A stretch of DNA of 64,000 nucleotides from Gnetum montanum (GCA_015680685.1 MNCI01003323.1:187538-251537); one strand, 5' to 3'; numbered from the stretch's first letter, positions 1 to 39,616 are shown. Notes: a model not told the origin generated them from the sequence alone. Program-made: numbers and translations.

Positions 1-1130
1 TATGACAATTGATACGGCCAAGGATTATCTTACGCTGGGGTTTCCCAAGCCTAAACCCCTCATTTCTGTGCCCTTGGCCCCACTTTCTAAAAAGGACGAA
101 GTTACACAAACACAACCATCTCCTCCTAGCCAAAAAAAAACATAGCCCTCAACCAAATGACACTCTTCCCTGAGAAATTCATCTCTTAGGGCGAATGGAA
201 GAGGAAAAGGATGACAAATAGCCAGATCGTGGATGGGATCTCTTTGATGCCTTTACACAAGTCAAACAGGCTCTAAAACAAAAAAATACAACATTAAGCC
301 TTTATGACTTACTCATGATGTCACAGAAACATCGTGAAGCCATGGTTCGTATGCTAACGTCCATACCTGTGGACGAGAGCCTGCCAACGGATGAAGATGC
401 AATTCATTCCATTATGCTTCCCCTCGCCACTAAAAAACCTAGGCCTACCCTGTTGACCTTTCATGATAAATCCATTAAGGATGACCCAGAAAAGGGTCAG
501 GTGACAACGACGCCCACGTTCATCACCATCTAGGTTGGCCAACACCTAATCCGGAGAGTACATGTAGACGACAGGGCTGCCACCAATGTCATCCCATATC
601 CCATAGTGGATAAACTAGGACTGATTGATCAGATCAGTCCTACAAAGACATCGTGTCTAAAGTCATTCAATGGGGCATGAGTGTAAGTCAAAGGGACAGT
701 GCACATCAACTTTGTGGCAGGGGACCAATTCTCCACAAACGTAACATTTATTGTCGTCAAGGAGATGCCTGGCTTCAACTTGATCCTAGGGAGGTCTTTC
801 TTAGCTCAACTGAGGGCAGTTTCATCACCTATTCATCAGGAGATCCATCTGCCCTACGTAGGAGGGGAAGTGGTCATCCACGGCGACAAAATGATCCCTC
901 GGGCTATCAATAACATAGAAACAAAACAAGGTTCAGAAATTAAAATTTTCAAAGACCAATCCCCTATCCAAGCACTTGAGCAAGCCAAAATGATGGCTGA
1001 TGGTAGCCATATTTAGGCCGAACTGCCATTCCAAGAGGAAGATTGTGGCGTGAATGAACAAAGTCATAAATCTCCTCATCCTTATGCATCACCAAAGATA
1101 AAAGCAATTAGGAAACAACTACAGAGTTAG
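1..1130 (+). pseudogene. E1 gag C-terminus plus aspartic protease, disrupted
   Basis: VHVDDRAATNVIP active-site motif at ~557-595 and FNLILGRSFL. Ends PYASPKIKAIRKQLQS* (TAG 1128-1130). Internal TAG/TGA stops. Confidence 0.85.
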
Positions 1131-1309
1131 CTAATAAACCATGTTTCCTAATTGTCATTCAGTTTACGTGCACTTCTCCACCAGCTGTACTATACATTCT
1201 TTACAAATACTCATTACATTTACACTTATATCTACGCTCCCACCAGCTATTCTCATTGCGCTTATGCTTATCTTCATGCTTCCACCAACAGTTTTCATTA
1301 CTATTACTC

Positions 1310-1500
1310 TCATCCAAAACTATCAAAGGCCCGGAATGGCCTAAAACTATCAAAGGCCCAAAATGGCCTTAAACTAACGATTTCATTTACGCTTTACATT
1401 TGAATCATTTAGTGGGCCTGCAACGGCTTTAAACTAGTAACTCCATTTATGCTGCACGCTTAAACTAACTGCAGCTTGTCATAGCACCAAAACCTATGAT
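1310..1500 (+). repeat. Hairpin-motif array downstream of gag-PR (GGCC-N6-GGCC-TAAAACTA)
   Basis: ggcccggaatggcc-taaaacta at 1328, ggcccaaaatggcc-ttaaacta, plus degenerate copies. Confidence 0.75.
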
Positions 1501-1637
1501 TCCATTTACGCTTTATACAAATGAAAACAACAAAAGAACATTAAGCTCAAGAAAAAATTTGCATTAAATACGTTAAAAGAAAATATTATCTTTTTTTTCG
1601 TTCCATCATAATAAAAACTATGGCTAATATAGCCATG

Positions 1638-4600
1638 CTATGCATCTCCCTTGTCACCACTATTACCCATATCTCTCAGCTCCACCTCTGCTTCGACAAA
1701 GTCATCCTCATAGGGGCCACCCTTTTCATGAGGCATCTCTTCATGAAGGAGGCCCTCTTTGCGAGGCTCCTCCATGGGGTTGTTTGCCATAGCATTGATC
1801 ATCACCATTACGCTCTGTTTCTTGTAGACCCTCTTCATGAGGACCATCACCTTCATTATGTTCATCCTGCTAAGGATCCTCCTCAACTCGTTCCTACAAT
1901 TATACATAACATGCATATTGACATCACCATCAAAACTAGGTATGAAGAAAAAACAATAATACCATGACTTACCTTTTATTGTCCTGCATCAGTAGCAAAA
2001 GGGATTTGTTCTAGGCCAACCAACAGACGTTGCATAATTTCATCCTCGGTAAGCTCAGACCAAACCCCATCTCCTAGATTAGATCTGGCCTTGACCTTCC
2101 CCTTCTCCACAGGAGTCCATTGAGGTGGTTCAAGGAAGAAGGAAGGGACGGTGGTCTCCCCCCCAAGAAGAGTCATTTCCCTTTCTGGGGAGGCACTTAC
2201 CTTCACTTGCTCCTGAAACTTCTCAAATGATCTAGAAGCACCAATGATGTCGAGGAAAAGTTGAAGGGACTGAGCCTCAACGGCAGAATCCCTGTAATAT
2301 TGACGGTAGGCAGCACTTTCCCTCTTATAGACATGTTTATGGTCTTTCTGCATCTGCCCCCATTCTTGGACACTCGCGCTAAAGTCCTTCCAATCTTGAT
2401 TTTTTTGAGCTAGGAGATCCATCTGCATTCGCTGCTTGACCAGTCCACGGTTGGTCTGGACACTGTTCCTGACGAGCATCCAATAACGGGCATAATCAAT
2501 AACAGCTATCCACTAGTCCTTGTTGTTCATTCCCTGGGCCTGCAGGAATTCGTTCCGCGACCTTAAATCCTCAAACTCATCACTTAGAGCCGCCTTCTCC
2601 TTCGCTGACCTTTGCAGTCTCTTCCAAAGGTCTTCATTCACGCTTTGGCATTCCCATAAGTAGCGAGTCAAGCGTATAGCACATTTACGCATCTCGTTGT
2701 AAATGTTGCATGGCACGACAATCGCTTCCAATGGAGGTTCGGTTGCATCTATGTCAATAGGCTCTGATGGATCCTATCTAAGGCGAGCTCCTAATAACAT
2801 AAAATGGTGGTTAGGCATAATTAGGTAGCGTAATGCCACAATGGAATAACCTCTATGTAATGATCGTAATGTACCGACTTTGGGATTGATTCGAGCTAAG
2901 CGACCGATCATATCCTTGACAACGCTTTCCATAAAGGCGAATTTATCAGGCAATTCACCCCAAGATCGGGTCACCACTATTGATAAGTGTACGCCCTAGT
3001 CACCTATTATGCAAAATAAATTACATATAAAGACATAACTGAGATGTTACAATGACTAGTATAACCTCTGGAAGTAGTTGTCTAAAGTCTAGTATGTCGT
3101 GAAAGCTAAACTCATAGAGTGACAAATCACTTACCTCTTCCTGTCCCAGCCAAAAGGACTTCGGCATCCTTCGTTGATACTTCCTTTTCACGCGTAGGAA
3201 TTCGCACGCTACTTGCCCTATTGACTAGGGTCTCTTCTTCCAACACCCAGGCCCCTTCTTCGTGCTGCAAAACCATAGCCCCTATTTTAGGGGTCAACCG
3301 CTCCACAACCTTCTCCTTTGCTATCACACAACATCGTCAATTAACACAGGATTTCACTCTTGCTCAATAAACATTACACAATGCAACAGCGTCTGTATGC
3401 AACATAACCACAACCATTAACGCATTTCTCTACTTACCGACAGGAGGATTACTCCTCTAAAATCTGACCTGCATCTTCTTTCCCACATCACCTGCTTGCG
3501 CAATAGGCCCCTCGGTCAAACGAGGCTTCTTCCGTGGCACCAACGAATCCACTATTTTATCCACCAAGTGCTTCCCCCTTGACACATCACCCTTATAAGA
3601 GGGGAGCACCCCACCCACACTATCTTGACCCCATGTTCAAGGTGCCACCATATCTATAGTCATTACTGACAACGACTCCCTGATTCCTTCAGGAGGATCT
3701 TGCGACTGAGTAGTGTCGAAAACATGGGAAATCCACGATTTGGAAATCTGGATGCAGTCTTGCTGCACCCAGACCCCATTCCTTTGGACTACCATAAATT
3801 TGGCAATACGCTGGAAGTAAGCTATGAAGAAGGAAAAATGCACATTGAAACGGGACTCAAGCTTCTTGCGAAGCCTGACCATTTCAGTGTGTAGGCCTTC
3901 GACAAAATAGCTGGCCCAATTGAACCAAGTTCCCTCCTCCATGACCTCTCGCATAATCCAAGCCTATTCTATGGTGAGGATTCTCCCTTGGGAGAGTGTC
4001 TTGGGGAAGGCCCAGGCTCGAAAAAGGGGGTAAATAGTATTAGCCACCTCTAGCTCAATCTTGTTAGCAGGGATTCCCTTAACCTCTTTTTTAAATCCTA
4101 GCCACTCCTCTATCTCAGACTAATGCTTGAAAATCCTCTTTGACTTTTCCTCTATAGGAAGGCCATCAGAGGGGATGCCAAAGAGATTGACGAGCTTCAA
4201 TATTAAAATTCACACACATGTTACGCACACGTATGCAAAGACACTTAGCTTCTTCGCTGAAGGAGTTGACTAGGGTCAACATTTCACCTGCAGTGACATT
4301 GGGGGTTATGGCCAAAAATAGGTCCATCAATCTAGCTTCCCGAATTTTATTGGTTAACAAAACTAGGGCTACTCTATGGCCAAGCCAGCGTTGTGTGTCC
4401 TTTATATCACCGTAACAGAAGAAGAGACTATTTGCCTCGCGACCGGAGGCCATAATCGTAATTTCTTGTGATTCCCTGACTATCAACAAATAACAGTAGT
4501 TAAGGAAATATAACAACAATAAGACAACTTCATACATCATTTCCAGCTAATAATAGTGTACAATTAATTGTCATAATAAAATTTACCGAGCCCAAATGGC

Positions 4601-5998
4601 AAAGGAAATGGAGGAATTTTCTCTTGCATGTCCGCGACGATGAGGGGAGAATCCAAAGTCCACTCCCTATCCAGCCATCCGAGTTTTTTACACTTGGTAA
4701 AGAATTCGACATAGCAGGTAGGATACTCTAGGATTTCGAAGGCCAGTTGTCCCATGACACCAGCCCGTACATTGTTGATGGAAGTAAATTCCCTTATGGT
4801 CCTTTTAGCTAGAGACAATGTACCGTTATCACCCAGGAGGCCATTGTCATTGATGAAGAATCTACATCACAGAAGATAGGAAAATTCTTTACGCTCAACA
4901 TAGATTCAAACAGTAGTTACCATATTGTAACACCATGAAAAGAAATAGAAAAAAAAAGAACTTACCTGCCTGCATAATACACGATGCCAGGTGTAGGCGT
5001 GATAATAGCTAAACTTGGGCATCTCCTAGATCCAGATCAAATGCCTCAAACCTTTAATGCTCTGTTCGTGGTCTTGCACTCACACAGTTTCAACTGCACC
5101 GTCTGTCAAGAATGTCAAAATGCTCTGCGTCAACCCAACCAGTAGCGTCTCTAGAATAGCAGCAGCTACATCGCCTGGTAGATGTGACCAGACGATTACA
5201 CTATAATTATGAAGCAAAAACTGCAAGAACTCCCGTGCGCCCCTTCGGAACCATACCGCCTCCTTCTTTATACAAGCATGAGAAGGAGGAACATAGGCCA
5301 CGGGACTATGTAAGTAGCATAGAACGTCCACGATGTCCAAAATAATTAGGACGGGCTTTAGCATAATACTGTACAATAAAAAAATGTGTTACCATTAGAC
5401 AAATTGTTTAGACATAAAGGTTCATAATGCGATATTAGGGTTCTCTTGACTCCCAAAAATTATAGATTATACTGGAGACGTATGGTCAAAATTGCCCAAA
5501 CCCTTGCAACAGCTCAAGGTCTGTCCTTGACAACAACAATGAAGGCAAGACTACGCATTATTCTAGCGTAACATGCAACTATTATAGGCGAGAAAAGAAA
5601 AAGAAAATAGAACCCTGATTATGCTACGCATGGGTACAATACCTAGACTTTTCTGATTATACATTACATCTACACAGTATTACTCAACATTACCCAAATC
5701 CTCGTGACAACACAAAGTCTGTCTCCAACAACGAGGACAAGGGTAATAGAACAAACTGCAATAGCTTAGTCTGCGTAAATAAATATTAACGCCAGACACA
5801 ACATACACATTCAAAATAGATACGACCATGACGCTGCAACAAAGATAACAATTGTGCAAGAGGATGAAAGACAACTTACCAGTTGAGCGGAGTAACCTCC
5901 CAAGTCTCGACTCTGGCCTACGAAGCTCGCTGCAAACTCTCTTGCACTTCATCAATCCTCGCCAATTTGGCATTCTTTCCTCTGACCTTTGGTGCCAT
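1638..5998 (-). pseudogene. E1 antisense multi-exon accessory gene (FCP1/NIF-like HAD pseudophosphatase, PMD-like region, helical/acidic tail)
   Basis: Exons 5998-5880, 5368-4966, 4861-4587, 4479-3438, then smaller exons to 1638. GT-AG borders and phases match the E2 and E3 copies. Motifs LIILDIVDVL, FRRGAREFLQFLLHNYSVIVWS, GTWFNWASYF. Confidence 0.85.
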
Positions 5999-6600
5999 AG
6001 CTACAATTGAACAAATCTTCGCGAAAATCGTGTGTTTACGCCTTGCTTCTACTCCCTTTTCACTGTAGCTAGATTCAAATTCGCGATACTTATGGCCTGT
6101 TTTGAGCATGAACCACTGGTTTATAAGTGAAATGTTTGAAACTAACTAATTTTATGCCCAATCGATGCGAAACTTTCCTGGAACGCCAGTGTCAGTATCA
6201 CATGAAACGCGAAGATCGGGGCATTAATTTCATGGATATCGTATGAATTGTGGTCCGAAATGACCCTAAACTAACGCATAGCTTATCATCTCGTAATCTA
6301 GCTGCATTAACTAAAATCTGTACAAAAATTAAAATTCAATTATTTCAACACGCTAGACATGCCACGTTACACCTTTCATTTTACTTAACAGAAGTCACAT
6401 GCTAGCATCTAGGAAGCTCGGCTCGCCATTTTTTCATAAACTGTGCATATTTGTAATGGTCCACCAAGACCTTAGATTGGAAGCTTTTCTAATATGCAAC
6501 TCTAATGCACAAAATAATAAACCCTTATCATTTCAACAGATCGGCAAAAAAGATAATGTAACAACTTCCATTTTTGGCAATTTTGCAGGGCAATTCATAA
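5999..6600. promoter_or_regulatory. Divergent intergenic region between the antisense gene and pol
   Basis: TATAAA on minus at 6125-6120 (palindromic TTATAA 6121-6126). Acceptor-like ttttgcag ends 6588, 12 nt before the pol ATG. Confidence 0.55.
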
Positions 6601-9600
6601 ATGGATGCAACTTTATCCACACCGCTAGCCTTAACAGGCTCGTATGGGGAGACCATTAGATAGCTCAATTACACACTAATAAGAACAAACCCTTCCCTTT
6701 TTGATGCAACCATAGAAACATTGAAAATATCCCCAGACTGGCCAGAACATTTGGTCCGAACTCTAGACCTAGAAGCTGGTGATGTGACCGAGGACCATAA
6801 CGCAAGTGCTCCAAAATAACATTGTTGTATTTGCGTGGTCATACGAGGACATGCCGAGATTAGACCCAAGATTAATACAGCATAACATAATCTTAGACCC
6901 ACGCATCAAAGCAACTAGACAGAAGGCACAAAAGATTAAGCCAGAAATCGTGCTAACAGTGCGTAATGAAATCACTAAGCTATATCAGGTTGGTTTTATT
7001 CGTGCGGTCAATTACTCAGATTGGATGTCAAACATCGTAGTTGTCTCTAAGAAAATAGGAGGAATACGCATCTGCATAGACTTCCAGGATCTGAACAAGG
7101 CCATGATTAAGAACAACTTCCTGTTACCGAGTATTGACCAACTGATCGATATAATAGCTGGTCACGCGCTTTTGTCCTTTATGGATGATTTTTCAGGTTA
7201 TAATCAAATTCGTATTAACCTGGAGCATCAATTGACCACAACATTCATGATGCCCTGGGGGACTTTCTGTTACGCTATGATGTCTTTCGAGCTAAAAAAT
7301 GCCGGAGCGACGTATCAACGAGCCATGAAATACATCATTAGCGGTTACCTCTTAGGGAGATTGAACGACTACGTAGATGACATAGCTGTCAAGTCTATAA
7401 AGTCAGAAGATCATTCAGAAGATCTAGAGTTAGTCCTTAAACGATGTCTCAAATATGACCTATGGCTCAACCCAAAGAAATGCGTATTTGGAGTCAAAAC
7501 TAAATGCATGTTGGAGTTTGTGGTATCAAAAACTGGCATCCGAGTCAACCCCGACAAGATTAAAGCCATTGTTGATTTAATGCCACCTACAAACCTCAAG
7601 GAACTGCATGGGTTGCAGGGTAGACTGTAATTTATCAGGTGGTTCATTTTGAAGTTAACAGATAAATTACATCCTATGCAACATCTCCTTAAGAAGGGCG
7701 TTAATTTTGAATGGACCGATGACTTCCAGCATGCACTTGACAACTTGAAGAAGGAGCTGCAACACTTACCAATGGTTTTCCCACCACAAAGGGATCAGCC
7801 TTTTTATATTTATCTAGCATACTCAGACGTGTCTATAGCTACGTTACTTTGCCAAAAAAGGAACGATGGGTCAGAAGCCCCTATCTATTATCTAAGTCAT
7901 GCTCTATTTGCATACGAAACAGGGTACAATGAAGTGGAGCATAACTGTTTGGCATTGGTCTTCACACTGAAGAAATGTAGATATTATTTTTTCCATAGCC
8001 AGGTCAACATAATTTGCAAAAATAATGTTCTGCGAGCTATCTCAAACAACTTGTATGAGAGTAGTAGGATAGCTCGTTGGAAAGCTATCATAGTCAAATT
8101 CTACTTACATTATGTTGGCCAATCGTCCACTAAAGGTCAAGCTATAGCTGACCAGCTTGCAACATCGCCTATTCATGATCAAGCTATGATAGAACCAGAA
8201 TTTCCAGATGAGCATGTACATAGTCTAAACCCTGTATCAATAGGCCTCGAAGCAACGTCATACTTCGACGAAGCTTCGACTACCATAGGCGGTAGTGCTG
8301 CCACTGTCATTACACTCTCCCCTGAGGATGTGTGTCCACTAGCTTACCACCTAGCCTTCCCTTGTATGAACAATATGGCAAAGTACGAGGGGCTCCTCAG
8401 GGGATTATTGACAACCAAGGAACTCAACATTCAACACCTAGCAATCCTAGGCGATTCGATGCTCTTCATCAATCAAATCATAAGGGTCTACACCTGCAAA
8501 GCTGTTCATCTACAGCCCTACTGCGATATGGCTAAAGATCTTCTTAAACAATTCATGACAACTAATGCCCAACACGTGCCATGTAACGAAAATGTTGTAG
8601 CCGATGCACTAGCCACACTGGCATTAAACATGCCACCACATTTGTTTGCCACTTGGCCCTCTTTAATGATAGAATGTATAGACCTTGTCATTCAAGCAGT
8701 GCAAATCTCTTCATTAAACACGGGAAGAATGCCAGAATGGTACGACAACATTAAGACTTACCTTTTGCATGGTGAACCACTGCATGAGCTAACGTATGCA
8801 CAAAAAGATGCAGTGCGTAAGTGTGCTAGGCAATACATCATCATCGGAGACAGTACTCTCTATAGACGCTCTTTCGATGGGGTATTGCTAACCTGCATTA
8901 ATAATGACCAAGCACAATGAATAGTGAGTGAAGTCCACAAGGGGTTGTGTGGAGGACACGTAGCCCCGCAAGCTATGGCCGCTAAAATCAGACACTTAGG
9001 GTACTATTGGCCGTATATGGAAAAGAATTTCCTTACCAAGGTCAAGACATGTGATACATGCCAGCGTCACGCAAACTTAATACATGTGTCCCCAATCGAG
9101 TTACACACTACACAAATTACTTGGCCATTCCAACAATGGGGACTAGATATCATAGGTCCCATCATGCCTAAATCTTCCACAGGACATAGCTTCATTATTA
9201 CCACCACTGAGTATTTCACAAAGTGGGTTGAGGCTATTCCTCTACGGAAGATTACATCTCAACAGGTTTGCCATTTCATCTTAGACAATATAGTAACCAG
9301 ATTTGGGCTTCCTATTACTATTGTGACTGACAATGGGCCACAATTCAGTAGTGCTGAAACCAAATCTTTTTGCGATAACCTTGGTATCAAGCAATATTTT
9401 TCTTCACCCTATTATCCGCAAGCAAATGGTCAAGCATAGGCAACAAACAAAGTGGTCATCAACTTGTTGAAAAAGATGCTCAGCAGCAACAAAAAGCGAT
9501 GGCACGAGAAAATCCTCTATGTGCTATGGGCGTATTGTACGATGTGTAGGACAACTACAGACAAGACGCCCTATAGCCTAGTCTATGGATCCGAAGCAGT

Positions 9601-9979
9601 GTTGCCCTTGGAATTGTAGGTTCCTTCATTATGTATGGTCCTCTCCATGGTTATAAATGAGACTCAACACAATCAGTCTAGGATCGTGGATTTAGACTTA
9701 GTCTGGGAGAAGTGCATCCAGATGCTCGACACCATCGAAAGGTATCAAGACAGGTGAAGACAAAAGCATCATCGTCACTTGCATCAACGACCGATCAAGA
9801 AAGGAGACTTGGTTCTCAAAGCCATTCGTGAATCAGCAAGTAAATTCTTTGCAAGTTGGGAGGGCCCTTTCTTGGTTATCAACGCATACGACAATGGAGC
9901 ATTCAGGCTAGCAGACATCAACAGCAACGAACACCCGAATCTAGTGAATCATATGTATCTGAAGCCGTACTACACCTAA
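6601..9979 (+). pseudogene. pol: E1 pol: RT, RNase H, archaeal-type RNase H, integrase (no protease)
   Basis: RICIDFQDLNKA, LSFMDDFSGYNQI, YVDD; aRH YFDEAS...NNMAKYEGL...GDS...NVVADALA; HHCC, WGLDIIGP, TDNGPQF, YYPQANGQA; ends LKPYYT*. Confidence 0.95.
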
Positions 9980-9999
9980 ACGTAGCGCAAAGGTAATAA

Positions 10000-10392
10000 A
10001 CGTCTGCTACAACATAAAACTGGCAATGTTGTACCCGTCCACTATGACGTAAACTAGCAAGGTTGTACATGTCTGCTAAGACGTAAAATGGCATTTCTTG
10101 CACGCGTCCATCAAGATGCTAAACTGGAAAAGTTTTTGACCATCCACCATGACGTGAAACTAGCAAGGTAAGAACATGTTTGCTGAGATGCTAAACCAGC
10201 ATAGACTTGTCCCTAGGTCATGACACAAAATTGACACCCACAGCACAGATTACTGGGATCATAAACTAGCTCTTCCACCATCCGCTACGATGTAAAACTA
10301 GCAGGTTTCAGTCTGCCTAGACATTAAACCAGGACCACGGTCTGCTGAGACTTAAAACCAGCAACAATGGTCAACCAGGACTCAAAAATGGA
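10000..10392 (+). repeat. About 12-unit hairpin-motif array after integrase (NRTC-N6-GAYN-nTAAACTRGCA with 4-11 nt spacers)
   Basis: e.g. cgtccactatgacg 10036-10049 and catccgctacgatg 10279-10292. Confidence 0.85.
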
Positions 10393-11552
10393 ATCTATCA
10401 ATAGAAAATCCATGAAGCAAGCGAGCGTGGTCACTCTTGCACTGCATCCCTACTAGATGGAATGGGTAAGGCGTTGGAACAGATGCAATGCCATTACCCC
10501 ACTGGCATCCTACTGATTCCTCGGATATGCCGAAAGGCATGCTACTGATCCCTCAGAGATGTTGCTACGACAGCCACTTCATAGTTGCATCTTCTAGGAT
10601 CAACTTCGTCGCTTGGGGCCTCAAAGAAACTGTGGTCATCCATAGTTTCAGTAGCCTTCACCCATCGCCGTCACTAGATTCTCGCTTAGTAGATTCATCT
10701 GACTGGTTCTTTGCTCAGTCATTCGAGTAAGATGAATCTGGCTATTGAAGGCGATTTCATGAACTACAGCATCAACATTGGGCCCCTTGATCCTTGCTAC
10801 AGTCCCTATTTTGTGGCCTACGCTCTCCTTTTCACTTCAGGCTACGCTTGTTTCAACAGCCTCCCTAGCGATTAGGATGATTTCTTTTGGCTCTCTGCTC
10901 TCTATTATGTTTTGCAGGTTACTTGTTATGACAGCGTTGATTGAGAATGCATTCATTAGGAGGCGAGGCATCACAGCATTCTGAGGTGGTTGCTCAAACT
11001 AGCCTGACTACTTGGAAGTGCAGACCCTTCCTTTTCTCCCTCCATCGGGTACCTTACTTCGCTTTCTCCTTCCCTTATCCTTACGACTGCCTTTACCCTT
11101 TTCTTCGTTTGTATAGAGTGTGAACATTTAATCAAGTACTTCGCATCATCATGTCCATGAACTGGCGTAATGTAGCTTGCCTTGTGGAATGTCAAAAAAA
11201 GGGGGGCAAGGCTTGGCAAAATGGATGTAAAACAACTCATCCAGGCCATGTGGGCATAACACAACTCATCTATGCAAGCCCTTCATGTGCAGTATGGTGG
11301 CGTAACTTCTCGCAAAAAGATGCCTAATGATGTGTTCGCGAGAGTTTCATGTTCACATACTTGAGTCTTCCCCGAATCTCCCTCCTCTCACTTCTATAAA
11401 ATTCCTCCTATGCTCTCTCCCCCCACCTTCGCACTTCCAAGTTTTACAAAGCGACATTTGAGCAGTTGCCGACAGACACTGTCGATGCCTTTACCTCTCA
11501 GGTGTTTCGTATTCTTTGTTGACGTATTTTGGGCAAGCCCTCTAAATGTCAA

Positions 11553-11566
11553 CAAAGAGGGGCCAT
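11553..11566 (+). other. E1 polypurine tract
   Basis: caaagaggggccat directly before the LTR start; E3 has the equivalent caaagagaagccaa. Confidence 0.7.
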
Positions 11567-13071
11567 TAAAACACCGTGAAAATTTCAAGGCCTCAATGGT
11601 TCAGCAAAATCCTACAACTCAGACAAGGATTTGCGACAAGTCACGGCTTAGCAAGTTCCCTTATCGACTAAGGGTATGTTCTGCCATGCTACACAGTGCA
11701 ACGTAATAAGCTCCAGAGGACAGAACAAGACAAGGGATGCACGACAGCAAACTTTCAACTTTGCAAGTTTTCTATGTCCCGAAAATCTTAACTTTTGGCA
11801 TATTACGCTGCATTATGCAACATAGCGTAACGTCGCATAACACAGTGTAATGCCAGAAGGTAGTCCATCGCAACATTAAATATGGCAAAATATTGAGACT
11901 TAAGCAACGATCTGCAGCATGCCGCATATTTCAGCAAGTTTTCTTTTTCGGTTAAGGGCCATATTACGCTGCAATACGCAGTGTAGCGTAATAAACCCTG
12001 GAAGGATTGAACAGAAACAAAGAAAAGCGCGGTGACAACACTTCAATTTTTTGCAGGTTCGCTATTTTACGCTGAATTGCGCTATGCAGTGTGTTCTAAC
12101 ATGATGCAGCGTAATACAAGAAATGACAAAGATAGTGCAATTTAGGTATCAATAGTTTATACGCCATAATACGCTCTCTAGCGTAATGTAATGTAATCAA
12201 AGAATAGTTTGTTGCCAAAGCTCCGGCAAAAGTGGTTTATGACGCATTACGCTTCAGAGCGTAATGTAGCGTGGCGCTGCAAGCTTCAAACACAAACACA
12301 CCAAATCAATGGCATCTTGTAGGTTCAGGACACGTGTCATCTAAACCGCGTTTTTCTCCTAACCCTAACCTTATAAATATTCCAGTCAACAAAGATTAAA
12401 GGGTTGGCAAAAATTTCTCTGGATAGGAAAATTTTCTCCGTGAGCAATTCTCTTTCGTTGGCAATTGTTGACAACTTTTGGAAAAGATTGACGAGAGGGC
12501 AAAAGAAGACCAGCGACTGTAAGAATATCAGAGGTGATTGGAAAGAATCCTTGATCAAAAATAGCCGGTTAACGGATACTCTACCTCAGGTTTGATTTTC
12601 CTTGTGCCCAGATTGGCTAGAACAAGGTAGATCGACCTTTGCTTGTTTTATCTTTAAATAGCTTTCTTGATGTTGGCACGTGCTTCGTCTAAACCGAAGT
12701 CTGCCTATAATCTTTGTATCCAAAATATTTTATTCATAAGTTACATCCCAGATCTTGGGATTGCATGTTCTCTAAATCCAATTTCCTATGTCCTATCTAT
12801 ACAAATTTTAAAATTGCTTTAAATAGATTACATCATTTTCAATTACCTTCGAGTTTAACGATATTATATCTTCTCATAAAAATCACCATTTTTCCATCCA
12901 ATTATCACAAAAATTTTACAAATTAAGTAAGTCCCTGTCTGATCGATAAGCCCATTCAGGCGACCTCGGATTCGTCTTCTCCAGCACAGCCCTCTCACAA
13001 ATTCGGGGTTGGAACTGTGTACACGGACTTCCGCTCGGTATTTCCAGCGATCAACATTATCTGTCATTACA
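11567..13071 (+). repeat. E1 3' LTR (~1.5 kb)
   Basis: Starts T(A)AAACACCG (others start TGAAACACCA). Ends atcaacattatctgtcattaca, which aligns with the LTR ends at 58107 and 24620. Confidence 0.75.
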
Positions 13072-13250
13072 CTAGCAGACCGCTATGCTATTTTATAGTC
13101 ATAGCAATCTATTTATGCCAGTTTTACATCGTAGTGGACCTTGGTGATGCTTTGCCAGTTTAACGTTGTAGCAGACGTTTGCTCATCTTTGCCAGTTTTA
13201 CGTCGTAGCGGATATTTGTTTGCCAGTTTTACATCATAGTAGACGATCTT
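13072..13250 (-). repeat. E2 post-integrase hairpin array, cut by the E1 LTR
   Basis: About 6 units, seen on the plus strand as tgccagttttacrtcgtagyrgac. Confidence 0.8.
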
Positions 13251-13264: not shown

Positions 13265-16200
13265 TTAGATGTAGTACAGCTTGAGATACGAGTGATTCAC
13301 CAAATTTGCAAACTCGTTGTCATCCATATCTACTAGCTTGAAGGCCCCGTTCCCAAAGGCTTTTGTGACCATGTATGGACCTTCCTAGTTTGCTGAGAAT
13401 TTGTTCATCTGCTCATGGACAGCCTTGAGAATGAGGTCTCCCTTCTGTATTGGTCATTGATTTAGATTCACATGATGTTTTTGCTACTACTTATTCTAGT
13501 AACGCTCTATGCGACTCATCGTTTGTGCATGCTCCTCCTCTATTGAGTCGAGGTCAATGATCCTCGACTCGTTGTTCTGGGCTTTGCTCATGACATTTGA
13601 TAAGATCATCCGAAGTGATGGCACCTACAACTCAAGAGGTAACACTACTTCAAATCCATAAATGAGACTGTAAGGTGTCTTACCTATCACAGTTCTGCAT
13701 GTGGTCCTGTAAGCCCACAGCATATAGAGGATTTTCTCATGCCATTGCCTCTTGCTGTTGTTAAGCATTCTTTTCAGCAAGTTGATGATGGACTTATTTG
13801 TAGCCTCAGCTTGTCCATTATCCTACAGGTAATATGGTGAGGAGAATGATTGTTTAATTCCAAGATTGGTGCAGAAGGTTCAGGTTTCCGTACTACTGAA
13901 TTGTGGCCCGTTGTCAATTACAATAGTCATGGGAAGCCCAAACCTTGTTACGATGTTATCCAAGATGAAGTGGCAAATCTACTAAGATGTAGTCTTCCTT
14001 AAGGGGATAGCCTCTACTCACTTAGAGAAATACTTAGTAGTGGTGATGATGAAGCTATGCCCTGCAGAGGACTTAGGTGTGATAGGTCCTATGAGGTCTA
14101 GTCCCTATCGCTGGAAAGGCCATGTAATCTGCGTCGGATGCAGCTCTGTAGGTGAAACATGTATGAGATTTGCATATCGTTGGCACATATCACACGTCTT
14201 GAATTTGGCCAGGAAATCATGCTCCATGTGAGGCTAATAGTACCCTAGACATATGATTTTTTCATCCATAGCCCTAGGTGCTATGTGTCCACCACATAGT
14301 CCCTCATGTACTTCATTAACCACCTTCTGCGCTTGCTCCTCATTTACACATGCCAACAATATTCTTTCATAGGAGTGTCTACATAGTGCATTGTCTCCCA
14401 TGAGCACATATTGCCGAGCATGCTTAGGAATTGCATCTCTCTGGGCAAATGTCAATCCACTTGAGGGCTCGCCATGTTGCAAGTAGGCTTTAATGTTGGC
14501 GTACCACTCCTAGGTATTCGCAGCGCTAATAGAGGCTACATGTACCATTTGAGTGATAGGCTCAGTACACTCGGTAATCAAGGTTAGAAAATTTACGAAC
14601 AAGTGTGATGAAATATTTAACACTAGGATGGCTAGGGCATCTACTATAATGTTTTCGTTACATGGCACATGTTGCACGTCTATAGTTGCAAACTGTTTGA
14701 GTAGGATTTTTGCTAAGTCGCAATAGGATTGTAGGTGTGTAGCTTTGCAGGAGTAGACCTTGGTGATTTGATTCATAACTAGTTGTGAATCTCCGTAAAT
14801 CACCAAGGGTTGTATGCTTAATGCTTGGGCTACTAAAAGCCCCCTAAGTTACCCCTTGTATTCTACCACATTTTTTGTACAAGGGAACGCAAAAAGATAA
14901 GCTAAAGGATGCATTTCCCCAGAGGGGAATGAAATGATAGTAGCCGCACTACCCCCTCGCACTGTCGAGGCATTGTCAAAATGCAAAGTAGCTTCAAGAT
15001 GTGATGGGACAGCCTTGATAGTGCTAACATGCTCATCTGGGAATTTGGGATCTATGATCGCCTGATCGTCGATGGGTGAGATCGTAAGTTGTGTTGCTAT
15101 GGCTTGACCTTTCGTTGATGATTGGCTCACATAATGCAAATCGAATTCTGCTATTATTGCTTTCCACTGGGCTATCCTACTGCTTTCGTATAGATTGTTT
15201 GTGATAGCCCAGAGTATGTTGCTCTTACAAATAATGTTAATTTTTCTACGAAATAGGTAGTGTCTCCACTTCTTCAATGCAAACACTAAGGCAAGGCAGT
15301 TTCTCTCCACCTTATTGTATTTCACTTCATATGCTATCAGTGCATGACTTAGGTAATACATTGGTATCTCAGAACTGTCATCCCATTTCTGACGTAACAG
15401 TGTCACAATAGATGTATCCGAAGTAGTAAGGTAGATGAAGAAAGGCTTGTCCCTCTGTGGTGGGTAAACAGTTGAGAGGTGCAAGAGGTCTTTCTTCAGA
15501 TCATCAAAGGCTTGTTGGCACTGTGGTGTCCATTCGAAGTTAACCCCTTTCTTTAGTAGATGGTGCATGGGATGTAACTTGTCAGTCAATTTTGCTATAA
15601 ACCTTCTGATGAACTATACTCTACCTTGTAACCTACGGAATTCCTTAAGATTTGTAGGTGGCGCCAGGTTAACGATGGCCTTGACTTTGTCAGGGTCCAC
15701 TTGTATTCCAACCTCTGATACTACAAAAACCCTAACATGTGTCCGGTTCTCACCCTGAAGACACATGTTTTAGGATTAAGGCATAAATTGTGCATCTGAA
15801 AACACTTGAGGACTATACCTAGATTGTTGGGATGATCAATGGCTTCTTTAGATTTCACCGTTATATCATCCACGTAGTCATTCAGCGTTTCTAAGATGTA
15901 ATGGCTAATGATGTAAGTCATGGCTCACTGGTAGGTTGCCCTGGCGTTCTTGAGCCCAAAAGGCATCATAGTGTAATAAAAAGTACCCCATGGGGTTATG
16001 AAGGTTGTTGTTAACTGATGCTATGGGTTAATGCGAATTTGGTTGTAGTAGGAGAAACCATCCATGAAGGATAATAGAGCATGACCAGCCATAATGTCAA
16101 TGAGTTGATCAATACTCGGATGTGGGAAATCGTCTTTGATCGTTTCCTTGTTCAGAACTTGGAAGTCTATATAGATTCGTATCCCTCTTGTTTTCTTAGA

Positions 16201-16735
16201 AACTACAATGATGTTAGACACCCATTCCAAGTAATCAACTGCCCGAATGAAACCAGCCTGGTATAGCTTGGTGATTTCATCCCATATGGCCAATGCAGTC
16301 TCTGGTTTAACCTTATGAGCCTTCTGCTTAATCGCTTTCATGCACAGGTCTAAGATGATGTTGTGCTATATCAGCCTTGGATCTAAACCCAGCATGTCAC
16401 TGTATGACCATGTAAAGACTTCAATGTTGTCTTACAAAATTTTGGCTACATCTTTGTGCGTCTACGAATCTAGGAGGGAACTAAGATTCAACGTTTTTAA
16501 CTCCCCCTAGATTTGGTCACAGGCGTCTTGATGAGAGGGTCCTCAGTTGCATCCTAGCCTCTAAATCTAGGGCTTGGACCAAATGTTCAGGCTAGTCTGG
16601 AAATGCTTCTAAGGACACTACAATGCTAACTGTGGGTGATTTCTAGTCTATTAGATCTGGTTTTAGTTGTCTTGCAAGTTTTCCATGTGGACCTGCTAAA
16701 GCTAAAGGTGAAGCGAGATCATGATGGAGTTCCAT
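13265..16735 (-). pseudogene. pol: E2 pol: RT-RH-aRH-INT
   Basis: Starts MELHHDLASPLALAG; LSFMDGFSYYNQI, YVDD, LHFDNAS, GDSQLV, HEGLCGGH. Many stops and frameshifts. Confidence 0.93.
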
Positions 16736-16859
16736 TCGTGCTCAACCTACCAAAATGAGATGAGAGTCTAGTCAAGAGCTACATGTTGGTAGTAATCATG
16801 CATAGTGAAAATTTGCAAAGTAGCAATAAGATGTAATCGGTAAAGTATGATGCAAAGCT

Positions 16860-17150
16860 CAAAATTCACCAGTTTAAAGTCATGGTAGACCGCTAAGACA
16901 TCAAATAAAAAACTGCTAGTGTAAAAGTGCAAAACTACTAATTTAATGTCATTTTAGACTACCTAGATGTAAAATGCAAAACTGCTAGTATAAATAATAG
17001 AAAGTTGCTAATGTAAAGATGTGAAATTGCTAGTTTAATGTCATTGTAGACTACTAACTATATTGAAACTATACACTAGGATTGATAGTTTAAGGTCTTT
17101 TTGGACCACCTAAAATGCAAGATATTTTTATGAAGGCAAATGGCTAGTTT
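16860..17150 (-). repeat. Hairpin-motif copies upstream of E2 pol
   Basis: Minus-strand ggtctaccatgactttaaactgg, agtctacaatgacattaaactagc, ggtccaaaaagaccttaaacta. Confidence 0.65.
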
Positions 17151-17294
17151 GAAGCATGTCAAAGCTTTTCACCCAGGCCCACCTATGTTAATGCGAACAG
17201 TGCTACGATGTCATGGCGAGCATGCTACGCTGCACAGAATACTTTGCATTAAACGGAGAGAGAGAATGACAAGTTTCCTTTTTACCATTATGGC

Positions 17295-17302
17295 TATAAA
17301 TA
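17295..17302 (+). promoter_or_regulatory. TATA box of the E2 antisense gene
   Basis: TATAAATA ~140 nt before the ATG, followed by ggtaaacttgtcatttt. Nearly the same sequence follows the E3 TATATA (51308-51313, minus). Confidence 0.6.
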
Positions 17303-17433
17303 GGGATTAACCCTTGGTAAACTTGTCATTTTCATTGTAACAGTGTAGAGCCCACATTCGGAGCATAGAGTGATTTTGTAAATAAGGAGCAAGATGGTTC
17401 GACGTAGTGACGAAGAAAGAGTTGGCAAGCAAG

Positions 17434-20400
17434 ATGATGGCTCTTAGGAAAAAACGCAAACACCCAGCACTTGCCAAGGTTGATGAAGTGAAAGAAACCC
17501 TAGGGCATGTGACACAAGCATGCATCGCGGTGCATGAGGAGACATCATTGACCCGGTAGGCCGCTATGCTTCCTCTATTTTCTTTCATGCCTCTGTCATT
17601 CATTTTTTTCTTTTCTTGTTTTTGTTCCTATGATTTTGTTTAGCTATCTGTGTATTTTCTGTCATTGTGTTATTTTTGTTTTGGCCCTTACACCATCACT
17701 GTTTCCATTTCAGCTACGGTGGATGCACATATGGTACGCTAAGGTTGCATGTAAGGTTTCCTAGACCGTCGTCGCTACGGCTGTCACTACCATAAAGGCT
17801 TGGATGATTTGAGCCACTTAGCATGCAAATAGCATAGTGTAGGACCCTCAGGAGGGTTTGGCAATCTTTGATGTGATAGTGTAACACATGTTCTATCACG
17901 GCATAATGTTAATCGCTTTGTTAGGGCTAATCACTTTGTCGCTACGCTAAGCTAATCTTGCTACGCTATTGCCTTCATATTTTTTGCTACGCTATACGCA
18001 TGAAGGGAATCATGCTATGCTATCTGCTGACATGCTAGTTTTGCTACACTATGTTTGAACTTTACTCGAACATGCCATTAACATTTGTTGTTATATTGTA
18101 TAGGGTAGTGCTAAGGCCAATCTTGATTTTCCTCGAAATTGTAAGGGTCTTGTGCTGCGTTAGCCAACCAGTGGCCAATGTTCCTCCACCCCATATGCAT
18201 GTGGGATAGCAGGAGGTTTGGTTCTGAGAGGGAGCATAGGAATTCCTACAATTTCTCCTCCAACACTTCAGTGTGATCGTTTGGTCACACCTGGTGGAGG
18301 AGGTAGCAGCCACCATAACAGAAACCCTATTTCCAGGGGCAAATAAGGGTATTTTGAGATTTTTGACAGATGGAGCAATCAATAGCCAGTAGGGAGAAGG
18401 ATTCAATCAGTGCCTCAAAAATTTGAGGCGTTTGGCTTAGATCTGGAAGATGCCTGAGTATAATTGCTACCATCCCTACAACACCTTGTTTATTGCATGT
18501 CACATGGGAATATGCTTCGAAAACCCACCAAGAACCATTTACAGTGTTAGCGAGTGAGTTTTGTAACCATGTTCTGCTACGCAATGTAATGTTTGATACG
18601 CTAGCTAAATGTTAACAGTGTGTTTTTGTTACCAGGTTTTTCATCAACAAGGATGGGCTTCACAGAAATACAGATGTGTTGAACTTAGCATAGATGGTGA
18701 TGCGGGAGTTTTCTTTCACTAAGAATATGCACGCAGGTGTGATAGGCCAATGTGGGGGTGAGTACAAAACCTACCCAACCCCGTATCCCAGACTCTACAA
18801 TAGATGCAAGGAGTCTGGTTGGTTAGATGAGGGATGGGCACCCTTTAAAACGATCGCTGTTGAAGATGTCTTGATTAATATTTTGCCATTCCCATCACCA
18901 TTTAAACCCAGTAAGCTAAACAGTAAGTTACTGCATTTTTGAGTGTCATTGCTATTTTTTCTACTATTGGTGCTTTGCCTAATCTTTTTCCTTTTTTTCT
19001 TTTTTTCCTTTTGTGTTTTTTTTTGTTCTTCTATGTTTTCTATGCAAACTGCTATAGAGGCGAAGAAGTCCTAGGAGGTGACGGTGATTACCTTTAGGAA
19101 CCAAGAGGCCAACATCTACTTCAAGTACGGGAAGGTAGATGAAAGCCAACATTGGATATGCAGTGCAGCCTTAGAATCCCTGACCAAGCACCTTCAAGAT
19201 GTCAGGCTCATGGATTTGTTCCTAGCCCCAAATCCAAGCATCCCCACCACTGAGATGCTTGCCCTGGCAGACTCCTTTTCCAAAAAGGCAGACCGCTTCC
19301 GCACACATGTACACAGCGTGTAGATGGTCCTTGAGATCAACGACCAACTATTCATGGACCTTTTTGGTGTCCCTACTAATGGCATCCCTATAGGGTCAAA
19401 GACCAAGAAAGAGGTGCACCATTAAAGGGAGGACGTTAAGGAGTGGTTAGGGGTTGCAAAAGGGTGAAAGGGGATCCCTATGGAGAAGGTCAGGCTGAGA
19501 GTCACCAAAGAGGTTTACCTTGTCTTCTGTGCTCATGCCTTCCCTCAACTGCTTTCCCAAGAGAAGATCATTGGGATTGAGCAAGCCTGGGTGATGTAGA
19601 AGGTGATGGAACAGGGGGCTCTCTACAACTAGGCTATATATCTATGTAAAGGCTTACAAACTGAAATCGTCGCACTTCATAAGAAGTAGGAGTCTCGCTT
19701 CAATGTGCACTATGCCTTTTACATAGCCTATTTGCGGCATTTTGCGGAGTTTTTAGTAGTCCAGGAGAATGGAGTCTAGATCATGCGAGATCAAAACCAA
19801 ATTTCCAAACTATGGATCTTCCAAATCCTCCAGACCACCCAAGCCCAAGACCCCCCAGAAGCTATTATGGAGTTATTTTCTATGATGACTAGGGATCGAG
19901 TGGCCCGTAACTTTTGTGGCCAAGACAACATGGGAGAGGTTCCCCCTACTACTATAGGTAGCATATCACAAGGGAAATGTCTCATTGCTGAGACAGTGGC
20001 CACTAAGTTGTAGTGAAAGAGGCCTTCTTCAGCTGAGGAGACCCTCTGTACAGAAGAAGAGGACGGGTAGACACTGTGGTTTAAGCTACGAAGGCCACAG
20101 CTTCCCATTAGTAAATGCTCTTTTCTATGTTTATCTTTTCACCTCTTAACTAAATGCTTGCTATGTTGTGCTACGCTAGATAGCGTAGCATAGCATAGCA
20201 CCTACTTTAACTAACATGGTTTAAGCTAAAATTTAAATATGTTTTTTTTGTTACTGCCAGAAGAAAAAGAAGAAGAAGAAGAAGGTGACGAAGAGGTATC
20301 AGCCCCCAAGATGGGGGCGATAAATAAAAACATGAAGGTCCCAGTCTCAGAGGAAAGGGCCTTGGTCAAGAGGGAAGGAGCTCCTATCACTAACGAAGGG

Positions 20401-22097
20401 GCTCTTGTTTTCAATGAAAATCCTTCTACTAATGAGGAGGACATTTTTGGAGACAAAGAGGAGTCTCCTATGGATGAAGAGGATGTTGGTACCTCAAAAG
20501 AAAAGGCCCCAGCAAATAAAGAAGAAGCCCACATCGACCTGGAAGGGACTTCTACTGAAAATCCCTTTACCGAACATAGTTTAGCATCAGGGGAGAAGAC
20601 GAATGCTAAAGGTGCTACTATAGTTTTGAGTTAGAAAGGAGGGGAGCTGAAATTAGATGTTGATGAGCTTGACAATATATTCGATGATGTGTCGATGGGT
20701 GATCCCCCGTTATCACCCTTGAGGGTTTACTGGGTAGGAGCCCTTATATTGTCATTTTCTTTACCCACAGCCTTATCATAGTTCACCTCAGTCATTCCTG
20801 ACATGTTTGGTTGCATGATAGACACCGTTGTTAATGCTGCAGGAGCTTCTCTGATTCGTGTGAAACCATGGGCCGAGATCCCCAACAAGCTTACCTTCAT
20901 GCAAAGGGTTGTCAACGACATGATCGGCCATCTCAGACAGGTCGATCCTAAAGCGGGTAAGTAAAGTAGCTACACTAGGCTCTTTAATGTTGCTACGCTA
21001 GATGTCTTGAGCTGCTAGCTTTGCTACGCTAATGTGATTGATGCGCTCTTTGCGTGGTTACAGCCTCTTGACTCAAATGGGACCCAAAACAGGCATTGAA
21101 AGTTGGCATCGTGCTTACATTCCTGCCCGAAGTAGCTAAGGTGCCTTGTCACATATACAACGAGGCTAGAAGATGCGCTTTGGACTCAGCATGCTCCTTG
21201 TGGAAGTGTAGGCACGTCAATGAGGACCTATGGAAATGGGTCCAGAAGGCTGAGAAAGAGAAGGCTGAACTGAGCGTTCAAATGGGAGACCTCCGATCTA
21301 GTACACGTTTGTCCTGGCTCGTGATACCAATGATGGCAGTTGGCGCATGGCTATCATAGATTATGCTAGATACTAGACAATCGTGTGGTGCAACAACAAG
21401 GCCACCAGGGAAATAATAGAACAGCTAATGTAGATGGACTTGTTGGCCTAGAAGAACTAAGACTGGAAAGATTATAGTACCAAAGTTTACGAGTGGGGGC
21501 AGTCCTAGAAAAATCATAAACATATGTATAAACTATAATGTGCCACCTACTGCAAACTATATAGGGATGCTTTAGTGAAGGTGTTTACCTATGAAGCATT
21601 CATGAATGCCATTGGCACTTTTGAGGCTTACAACAAGTTCATGGAGCAGATAAAGGTCAGTGAATCTCCTAAACAGGAAGTGGATCTTCCCACAGGTGAG
21701 ATCGCTACCGCCTCCTTTTCTCTGGGACAGCCAAGATGGACGATGGTCAGAAAGGAGAAAGCTCCTGTAGATGCTGAACCAAGCGATTAGCATTGGGCAA
21801 ATATCATGGAGAAGGAGGTCTGGCACCACCTTGGGCTTAGTTTAGATCACATACCCTTCGATATACACACAAGGCCATCTCAGGTTAGTCACTTTCTATT
21901 GTGTTAATGCTTATGCTCTATTCTAGCTTTCATGTGTTTCTCTAGTTGACTACTTCACTTTTACAATGTAGGTTCCAGATGAAGATGCAGGGCCCACAGA
22001 GGGCAGAAATGAAAAGGCAGCAAGGAGCAATGTAGAGGAAGGTGATGCAGAAGGGAATGATGTGGGCAAAGATGATGTGAGTGAAGACAACCCATGA
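17434..22097 (+). pseudogene. E2 antisense multi-exon accessory gene (HAD-like, PMD-like, helical/acidic)
   Basis: Exons 17434/7-17555, 18104-18553, 18636-18910, 19058-20110, 20261-~20730, 20771-20956, 21064-21883, 21972-22097. GT-AG borders; the first three introns are in phases 2, 2, 1 and splice in frame. Confidence 0.88.
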
Positions 22098-22269
22098 CAG
22101 CATGGGGTTTTTGAAATTTTGAATTTTTTGTAAAATTTTTGCAAACATTGTTTAAGTGACAAAACTTTTTAATGAAAAAGGAGAATTTTGGAAAAGGCAT
22201 TGGTTCTATGCTAACTTATGCATTGTTTATGTGATGAATTTTATGTTATGTTTTCAATTTTGATGTTTT

Positions 22270-22450
22270 AATTTTAGGTCATTTCAGGCCCTTGCTAGTT
22301 TTAAGCCATTTCGGGACATCGCTAGTTTTAGGGCATTTCAAGCCATGGCGTGGTGGCATAGTTTTAGGCCATTTTGGGCCATGGTGGGGTAGCATAATTT
22401 TAGGTCATTTCAAGGCATGGGATAGTTTTAGGCCATTTCAGGCCATCGCA
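22270..22450 (-). repeat. E2 hairpin array downstream of gag-PR
   Basis: About 6 units, seen on the plus strand as tagttttaggccatttcaggcc. Confidence 0.8.
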
Positions 22451-22578
22451 TGGTAAAGGAATGATATGCTAATGATTTAGAGGACGACTAATTAGTACCT
22501 AGCATAGATGGATGGATGCAAAACAAAAAGGTAATAGATGTACAAAGGATGGTGACTGGGCAAGAAGCAGTGGAGTTG

Positions 22579-22995: not shown

Positions 22996-22999
22996 GTGC

Positions 23000-24614: not shown

Positions 24615-24619
24615 GAAAC

Positions 24620-30375: not shown

Positions 30376-30379
30376 TCAA

Positions 30380-38881: not shown

Positions 38882-38886
38882 CATGG

Positions 38887-39535: not shown

Positions 39536-39538
39536 TTG

Positions 39539-39551
39539 TGGTATCGAAGCT
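39539..39551 (+). other. Tekay PBS (tRNA-iMet-like, degenerate)
   Basis: tggtatcgaagct versus canonical TGGTATCAGAGC, 3 nt after the LTR. Confidence 0.75.
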
Positions 39552-39616
39552 AGTTTACTTCGATATTATAAGATGGTGTGAATACTCACCCATTTGTGTA
39601 ATTTCATGTTACAAAG

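Follow-up and report, generated by a model that had tools for sequence, protein, structure and literature searches.

Long terminal repeat (LTR) retrotransposons make up most of many plant genomes, and are generally credited with only a few simple gene layouts. A stretch of 64,000 nucleotides (nt) from Gnetum montanum (GCA_015680685.1 MNCI01003323.1:187538-251537), called the window below, poses the question of how such an element is organized when a large spacer separates its protease from its reverse transcriptase (RT), and of what fills that spacer. The answer reached here is that the window most probably holds a decayed lineage of the Tat clade of Ty3/gypsy retrotransposons, of the angiosperm type, in which a gag-protease open reading frame (ORF) is followed by an eight-exon gene on the opposite strand and then by a separately starting pol. 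The copies of this lineage are designated E1 to E4. With a conserved gene of several exons placed within gag-pol, the layout would be new.

E1 occupies positions 1-9979 on the plus strand and is contiguous. Its features are as follows.

1-1130, plus strand: 3' part of gag and protease ORF, cut by the window start, with decay stops and the ancestral stop at 1128-1130.
1316-1515, plus strand: hairpin array of GGCC-6 nt-GGCC units with a TAAAC-like tail, between the gag-protease stop and the 3' end of the antisense gene.
1741-1893, minus strand: antisense exon 8, a short acidic tail with a decay stop inside.
1973-2790, minus strand: antisense exon 7, the C-terminal region, by eye rich in helix and coiled-coil-like, without a Pfam family; tblastx matches in E2, E3 and E4.
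2875-3003, minus strand: antisense exon 6, with its donor at the same codon in E1 and E2.
3135-3320, minus strand: antisense exon 5, variable and charged; much longer and acidic in E2, where its boundaries are uncertain.
3438-4479, minus strand: antisense exon 4, large central domain with no Pfam family; 1042 nt against 1053 nt in E2.
4587-4861, minus strand: antisense exon 3, 275 nt in E1 and E2, flanked on either side by GT-AG introns in E1, E2 and E3.
4966-5368, minus strand: antisense exon 2, a NIF/FCP1-like haloacid dehalogenase (HAD) domain with an altered motif I.
5880-5998, minus strand: antisense exon 1, ATG at 5998-5996, with a basic start resembling a nuclear localization signal; 119 nt in E1 and E2.
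5999-6579, no strand assigned: interval of about 600 bp from the antisense ATG to the pol start, presumed promoter region of the antisense gene, with one hairpin unit at 6252-6276.
6580-6603, plus strand: acceptor-like site and pol ATG, with AG at 6587-6588, ATG at 6601-6603 and an in-frame TAA between them.
6601-9979, plus strand: pol, comprising a conserved leader of about 60 codons, RT, RNase H, added RNase H and integrase.

The pol of E1 gives Pfam matches on the plus strand from 6788 to 9436 in the order RVT_1, RT_RNaseH_2/RT_RNaseH, RVT_3, Integrase_H2C2 and rve. RVT_3 (PF13456, E 3.6e-12) is the archaeal-type added RNase H (aRH), and it lies between RT_RNaseH and the integrase zinc domain. 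An aRH marks the Tat clade, which belongs to the OTA superclade, and the position of this domain between RNase H (RH) and integrase (INT) is the hallmark of the angiosperm Tat elements, Ogre and Retand (Neumann 2019, PMC6317226); E1 has the domain in its polyprotein and at this very position. A protease fused to gag is the rule in the Tat lineages of flowering plants (IV-VI) (Ustyantsev 2015, PMC4408406). E1 has the same arrangement, with the protease motifs in the ORF that ends at 1128-1130 and pol beginning at 6601. The nearest relatives found for its pol are angiosperm Tat proteins from Ipomoea, Solanum, Nicotiana and Tasmannia, at no more than 35% identity.

Because the Pfam match to the protease is faint (gag-asp_proteas, E 0.18, on the E3 copy), the protease is assigned by motifs and position. 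The translated upstream ORF of E1 contains the retropepsin-type motifs VHVDDRAATNVIP at 558-596 and NLILGRSFLAQLRAV at 777-821. The frame closes with IRKQLQS and the TAG at 1128-1130, a decay stop having already interrupted it at 1014. The ORF is collinear with E3 26904-27683, E4 60420-59799 and E2 22996-22588.

E2, the second contiguous copy (13265-22996, minus strand), has the order of E1: the gag-protease (gag-PR) ORF with its stop, the hairpin array, the antisense gene and RT-RNaseH-aRNaseH-integrase. The other two copies each retain a part of it, E3 the junction between the antisense gene and pol, and E4 that between the protease, the array and the 3' end of the antisense gene. The features of these copies are listed below.

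13265-16735, minus strand: E2 pol, ATG at 16735-16733, decayed.
17437-22100, plus strand: decayed E2 antisense gene of eight exons, on the strand opposite to the gag-PR and pol of E2 itself.
22588-22996, minus strand: C-terminal part of the E2 protease and its tail; E2 is 5'-truncated here.
26904-27683, plus strand: part of E3 gag-PR, 53% identical in amino acids to E1 over 260 codons.
46380-49640, minus strand: E3 antisense gene, exons 2-8 recognizable, exon 6 not found.
51731-55185, plus strand: E3 pol, beginning at the conserved ATG at 51731.
58109-58800, plus strand: last two exons of the E4 antisense gene; the element is truncated beyond.
59799-60420, minus strand: part of E4 gag-PR, a collinear match to E1.

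In tblastx the matches between E1 and the oppositely oriented E2 are collinear, from the protease (E1 738-1124, E2 22996-22588) through a chain of antisense-frame blocks (E1 5385 to 1955, E2 18087 to 21901) to pol (E1 6791-9982, E2 16455-13262). In E3 the antisense blocks (49628 to 46585) are followed by pol (52021-55185). In E4 gag-PR (60420-59799) is followed by the last two antisense exons (58109-58800), the large one being matched at 58109-58594. The solid evidence for the layout is these two contiguous copies and two half-junctions. The protease and RT are about 5.7-5.8 kb apart in E1 and about 6.1-6.3 kb apart in E2; from the gag-PR stop to the pol ATG the distances are about 5.5 and 5.9 kb. 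No conserved sense ORF was found in the interval of about 5.7 kb between the stop and RT of E1.

A first-pass annotation of the window had placed the protease and RT about 5.5-6.1 kb apart in three copies. This agrees with E1 and E2 and fails for E3, in which the protease (ending at 27683) and RT (starting at 52021) are about 24 kb apart, with a block of other Gypsy sequence between them. Its claim that a spliced antisense gene fills the gap is borne out by the collinear antisense-frame matches in E1 and E2 and by the E3 blocks beside pol, and the junction it described in E4 is present as well. It had also aligned the gag-PR stop in three copies; the alignment stands for E1 and E2, and the third motif reads best in E4, not in E3.

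The next question is whether the antisense unit is a gene at all. The spacer might instead be conserved as non-coding RNA structure or regulatory DNA, its ORFs and splice sites having arisen by chance. The stops in all copies, the lack of homologues in protein collections, the poor fold predictions and the silence of the window's own copy would all suit such an origin, which is nevertheless extremely improbable in view of the following. The antisense frame is the best of six and outscores the sense frames in each block (for example, 225 versus 176 bits and 155 versus 86 bits in tblastx). Differences between E1 and E2 are concentrated at third codon positions in every block. Over 806 codons in blocks picked by tblastx, a choice with some bias toward this pattern, they amount to 0.40, 0.31 and 0.57 at positions 1, 2 and 3, with the same order in seven of seven blocks (chi-square p 5e-16); the RT control gives 0.21, 0.16 and 0.50. 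The blocks can be aligned, whereas the DNA between them cannot.

The splice sites and exon lengths point the same way. Seven GT-AG introns are found at matching positions on the antisense strand of E1 and E2; GTAAGT and GTGAGT are frequent among the donors, and the acceptors are pyrimidine-rich and end in YAG. Introns 2, 3 and 7 and the acceptor of intron 1 match in E3, and intron 7 is probably present in E4; the last intron and the acidic tail exon are conserved in E1, E2 and E3, and probably in E4. Exons 1 to 7 of E1 and E2 measure 119/119, 403/450, 275/275, 1042/1053, 186/473, 129/186 and 818/820 nt, where the limits of exons 5 and 6 are uncertain in E2 and exon 2 of E1 carries a deletion at its end; two exons are thus identical in length. 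The basic stretch of exon 1 reads MAPKVRGKNAKLARIDEV in E1 and MALRKKRKHPALAKVDEV in E2, with the same phase, length and conserved residues in both, and exon 4 is 45% identical in amino acids between these copies over 228 codons. A Pfam family, NIF, is matched above its curated cut-off. The frame scores, codon positions, introns and exon lengths are four lines of sequence evidence which together argue that the antisense unit is a real gene.

The introns of E2 have a peculiarity of their own. The 9-mer GCTACGCTA occurs 12 times in 17941-23683, against 0.08 expected from shuffles. It is confined to E2, where it is found in antisense introns 1, 4 and 6 and in the region just past the protease, with some inverted pairs (20170-20189). 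The introns of E1 have looser TACGC-type motifs, and GCTACGCTA is specific to one subfamily.

The nature of the antisense protein is suggested mainly by exon 2. Profile, protein and Protein Data Bank (PDB) searches of the antisense gene were run exon by exon or piece by piece. Exon 2 of E1 matches NIF (PF03031) with E 7.4e-5 and 22.9 bits, against a curated cut-off of 21.8, and a 50-residue piece of E2 matches the same model in the same register (E 0.016, 15.3 bits). NIF belongs to the NIF/FCP1/SCP family of carboxy-terminal domain (CTD) phosphatases, which includes non-catalytic members such as TIM50. Exon 2 fits the model from the motif I strand through the next helix and strand, and its 'EFLQ...' is placed as in SCP1. 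It differs from the family in the catalytic motif I, DxDx(T/V). The DxDxT motif is replaced by D-I-V-D-V in E1, E-I-V-R-V in E2 and E-L-M-G-I in E3, so that the second aspartate is absent in all three decayed copies and both are absent in E2 and E3. The NIF domain, if real, looks non-catalytic.

The PDB sequence search with the antisense pieces gave nothing relevant, and no pairwise similarity to solved NIF structures was detected in it. Pfam has no family for exons 4 and 7. PMD (PF10536) was not matched even at E 10 by the exon 4 pieces of E1, E2 and E3, which are short and broken and could be distant homologues. In the ESM Atlas no match reached 0.9, and a PMD cluster appeared only at rank 18 with a score of 0.75, in the chance range. 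Within the length and word limits of the search, the 108-residue piece of exon 4 had no relatives among 1.84 billion representatives, and the 178-residue piece of exon 7 and the 101-residue NIF piece had none in protein collections. A match of the exon 4 piece to bacterial SH3 sequences was rejected as an artefact of summed repeats. Structure predictions for two single exon pieces had predicted local distance difference test (pLDDT) values of 49 and 55 and were unusable.

Is the antisense gene a part of the element or a guest in it? It could be a mobile element in its own right or a gene taken from the host, which entered this site repeatedly or, in a single family, once. Extra ORFs of retrotransposons are believed to be captured sequences, the NIF-like domain belongs to a cellular type, and similar short hairpin units flank the module on both sides. 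Such an origin is very improbable, however, because copies 31-34% diverged in DNA have both junctions of the antisense gene at homologous sites, and because the module has diverged in step with pol and gag-PR. DNA identity between the copies is only 66-69% in the self-comparison of the window. Amino acid identities for E1-E2, E1-E3 and E2-E3 are 64, 56 and 58% in pol, 45, 38 and 38% in the antisense gene, and 61, 53 and 59% in gag-PR; E1 and E2 are the closest pair in all three modules, and the antisense gene evolves faster.

The flanking hairpin units are also unlike the ends of a mobile insert. Those after gag-PR (1328-1439) and before pol (6252-6276) in E1 are both in the sense orientation, direct to each other. 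The motif is present in E2 at 22240-22420 and in E3 at about 45905-46205, and a tandem repeat lies at 10017-10087, past the integrase of E1. Rfam matched no family anywhere in the window, hairpin units included. The units, which bracket the antisense gene, may serve the genomic transcript as RNA signals. A search for terminal inverted repeats flanking the module in E1, E2 and E3 gave only short, unrelated pairs at chance level. The homologous junctions, the congruent divergence, the direct hairpin orientation and the absence of consistent inverted termini in these three copies support the view that the antisense module is an integral, inherited part of the lineage, rather than a separate mobile insert or a one-off insertion. 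The first-pass annotation, which regarded the layout as ancestral, is upheld by the same junctions and divergences and by the closeness of E1 and E2 in every module; inverted termini of the insert's own, which it had named as a sign to the contrary, were looked for in vain in these copies. This view leaves room for one ancient capture at the root of the lineage, which would be no rival to it.

How does an element with this layout express pol across a gap of 6 kb? It could do so by a giant intron of the Ogre type or by Gag-independent synthesis of Pol. Just before pol, E1, E2 and E3 align in a T-rich tract ending in YAG|G, with an ATG 12-14 nt later, and upstream of this acceptor-like site the alignment breaks down. 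The ATG (E1 6601; E2 16735, minus strand; E3 51731) has a purine at -3 and G at +4 and is in frame with the conserved leader of about 60 codons and then RT. An in-frame stop interrupts the stretch from acceptor to ATG, TAA in E1 and TGA in E2; E3 has none. By a rough donor-matrix score, no splice donor above background follows the protease in E1, E2 or E4.

One explanation is that the entire spacer of 5.5-6 kb is a sense intron, partly spliced, which fuses gag-PR to pol as in Ogre, and that the accessory gene has settled inside it. In Ogre this very place is taken by a spliced intron, and gag-PROT and pol are separate ORFs; both the acceptor-like site common to the three copies and the open frame between acceptor and ATG in E3 would fit. 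A conserved or good-scoring donor is lacking in E1, E2 and E4, however, and the in-frame stops of E1 and E2 would interrupt the fusion, while the ATG context is kept in three of three copies. No splice joint was seen in RNA either, where coverage is far too thin to count. A giant fusing intron is accordingly a live possibility, though an unlikely one. Judged from the decayed copies, translation of pol from its own ATG is somewhat more likely than an Ogre-style gag-PR-pol fusion, because the ATG is conserved together with the acceptor, in-frame stops precede it and no convincing donor follows the protease.

Four RNA runs of the same species label were mapped on 800-6799, and each gave 42-263 reads there. 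The coverage is far too thin and says nothing for or against splicing. E1 itself is not detectably expressed, and the reads come from relatives. One run, X11, is clearly strand-biased, its first mates being almost only plus over 1800-3800 and almost only minus over 6000-6599. Reads of a relative about 90% identical pile up 13- to 18-fold on one strand at 6000-6537, and 16 molecules end at 6536/6537, a point that precedes the pol acceptor-like site by about 50 nt and is about 540 nt upstream of the ATG of the antisense gene. Which of two readings applies depends on the chemistry of the library: the pattern reflects either antisense-gene RNA together with sense RNA primed internally at a nearby A-run, or an antisense start about 540 nt upstream of the ATG.

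Several points weigh against the organization proposed here. Stops and frameshifts break every copy, and none in the window is an intact three-gene element. The stops ahead of the pol ATG could themselves be decay mutations. The codon-position test carries the selection bias given above. Support for NIF is modest at 22.9 bits, without matches in the PDB or in protein collections. The four thin RNA runs contain no read at least 99% identical to E1 and no splice joint, antisense or sense. Moreover, no LTR pair, primer binding site (PBS) or target-site duplication can be defined for the copies in the window. LTR pairs searched for E2 and E3 were not found, and upstream of E3 gag no PBS or LTR end is recognizable; the PBS of Ogre is one for tRNA-Arg. 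The 5' end of E1 is cut by the window start, and E2 is truncated at the protease. E1 and E2 stand tail to tail with about 3 kb between their integrase ends (10093-13153), or at most about 1.5 kb for each including any LTR; no conserved ORF was seen in this interval, where the elements may be truncated.

E3, finally, could be two separate fragments. Its gag-PR part at 26904-27683 sits about 19 kb upstream of its antisense gene, and between the halves there is a block with direct repeats 84% identical (29109-29808 and 44052-44790) and other Gypsy pol fragments. Continuity is plausible, without an LTR pair to tie the halves together.

29109-45457, no strand assigned: other Gypsy-type block, bounded by direct repeats, separating the E3 protease from the E3 antisense gene.

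This block is a compound insertion of another Gypsy family with Pfam matches to SH3_Tf2-1, RT_RNaseH and Integrase_p58_C; the Pfam survey found other Gypsy domains only and no PMD in it. A repeat of about 1.3 kb is present in three partly overlapping copies (29109-30373, 38017-39535 and 44052-45457), which suggests tandem or recombined elements with common LTRs. Elsewhere, 24618-25184 and 57465-58109 form an inverted non-coding match of 67% identity in which all six frames score alike, and each of the two segments is followed by a related tandem array (25202-25996 and 56718-56929, respectively). Two family members in opposite orientation may have contributed these segments as LTR-like sequence. 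The match was of no help in pairing LTRs. An assembly gap of 151 N lies at 62270-62420.

Layout, coding signature, intron positions and the co-divergence of the three units are direct observations, and from them the following organization is proposed. The first unit would be the gag-protease ORF ending at its conserved stop. The second would be the opposite-strand gene of eight exons and roughly a thousand codons, encoding a protein with a basic N-terminus, a NIF/FCP1-like HAD domain without DxDxT, a large domain, a charged exon, a helix-rich C-terminal region and an acidic tail. The third would be pol (RT-RH-aRH-INT), with its own conserved ATG a few bases past the conserved splice-acceptor-like site. 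The spacer of 5.5-6 kb would stand in place of the short Ogre intron. The antisense introns would be invisible to the spliceosome on the genomic (sense) RNA and would survive each round of reverse transcription, so that antisense placement carries them through. The pol RNA would arise either by splicing from an upstream donor to the acceptor before the pol ATG or from an internal start, which would fall within the 600-700 bp or so between the two divergent ATGs, and pol would be translated alone, with no gag-PR fused to it.

The antisense protein is probably, as we infer, a nuclear, non-catalytic binder of phospho-proteins, for example of the RNA polymerase II tail, and would regulate transcription, RNA processing or silencing of the element. 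With a dead CTD-phosphatase-like domain and a large unassigned one, it is a candidate for a transposon-encoded regulator of transcription or silencing. Taken to its full extent, the proposal is of a three-cistron element in which Pol is made independently of Gag and a resident antisense, dead CTD-phosphatase-like protein steers host RNA polymerase II, RNA processing or silencing at the element's own copies; in this form it is speculative and unlikely as a whole. To our knowledge, Gag-independent Pol is known in foamy viruses and not in LTR retrotransposons. Standard annotators, which expect an adjacent protease and RT, will split or misclassify elements of this kind and may take the antisense gene for one of the host's.

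Among known systems, Ogre (TatIV; the Ogre clade in REXdb), found in legumes and other angiosperms, is alike in its Tat clade, its aRH between RH and INT, its separate gag-protease and RT-RH-INT ORFs, its giant size and its extra ORF. The differences concern the spacer and the accessory gene. The spacer between gag-PROT and pol of Ogre averages 274 bp and is a partly spliced, non-coding intron (Neumann 2019, PMC6317226), whereas that of the Gnetum elements measures about 5.5-5.9 kb between stop and ATG and holds an eight-exon gene. The extra ORF of Ogre lies upstream of gag in the sense orientation, and those of other Tat elements lie between pol and the 3' LTR in antisense (PMC4408406, PMC6317226, PMC7264820); the Gnetum gene is internal and antisense. 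The Gnetum elements also have no good donor after the protease, and their pol has its own conserved ATG.

Retand, TatIII, TatV-VI, maize Grande (gene23) and rice RIRE2 belong to the same clade and also have a conserved antisense accessory gene. Where studied, such a gene has its own promoter and a nuclear protein product (PMC7264820). All of them have the antisense ORF downstream of integrase and ahead of the 3' LTR, in Retand as part of a long internal region; the Gnetum gene instead occupies the gap from protease to RT. Extra ORFs of Tat elements encode PMD, PMD-coiled coil or Transposase_28 products and are 3' antisense or 5' sense (Ustyantsev 2015, PMC4408406). In the Gnetum protein Pfam finds neither PMD nor Transposase_28, but a NIF-like domain. 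Additional ORFs are placed only upstream or downstream of gag-pol by Vicient and Casacuberta (2020, PMC7264820). The extra-ORF positions and the short Ogre intron had been given in the first-pass annotation in agreement with these sources. It had also failed to recognize the layout as described, and no gene between protease and RT was found for published elements in the reachable literature, a set that lacks some key Tat papers.

More distant parallels are found in retroviruses, with foamy viruses as an analogy only. Foamy viruses (Spumaretrovirinae) make Pol from its own spliced mRNA, and the protease stays with Pol. The points of likeness would be a pol start codon just past a splice acceptor, which is putative here, and hence a Pol not made as a Gag fusion, acceptor and ATG being known here from sequence. 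In foamy viruses the protease is with Pol and the splice is proven, whereas here the protease is with Gag and the splice is putative. HBZ of human T-cell leukaemia virus (HTLV) type 1 is a spliced antisense gene with one intron, which starts in the 3' LTR, downstream of pol and env. Like the Gnetum gene, it is an intron-containing minus-strand gene of a retroelement, its intron being kept because it is not recognized on the genomic RNA; the Gnetum gene differs in having seven introns and in lying inside the gag-pol region. Antisense promoters are on record in HTLV (PMC7264820).

Separate gag-PR and pol ORFs are already the rule for angiosperm Tat elements, so that the novelty lies in how large the spacer is and what it contains, and not in the split. 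There is good support for the view that the Gnetum lineage is a structural variant of Tat elements, in which the gag-PR/pol spacer is enlarged about twenty-fold and holds a conserved, intron-rich antisense gene.

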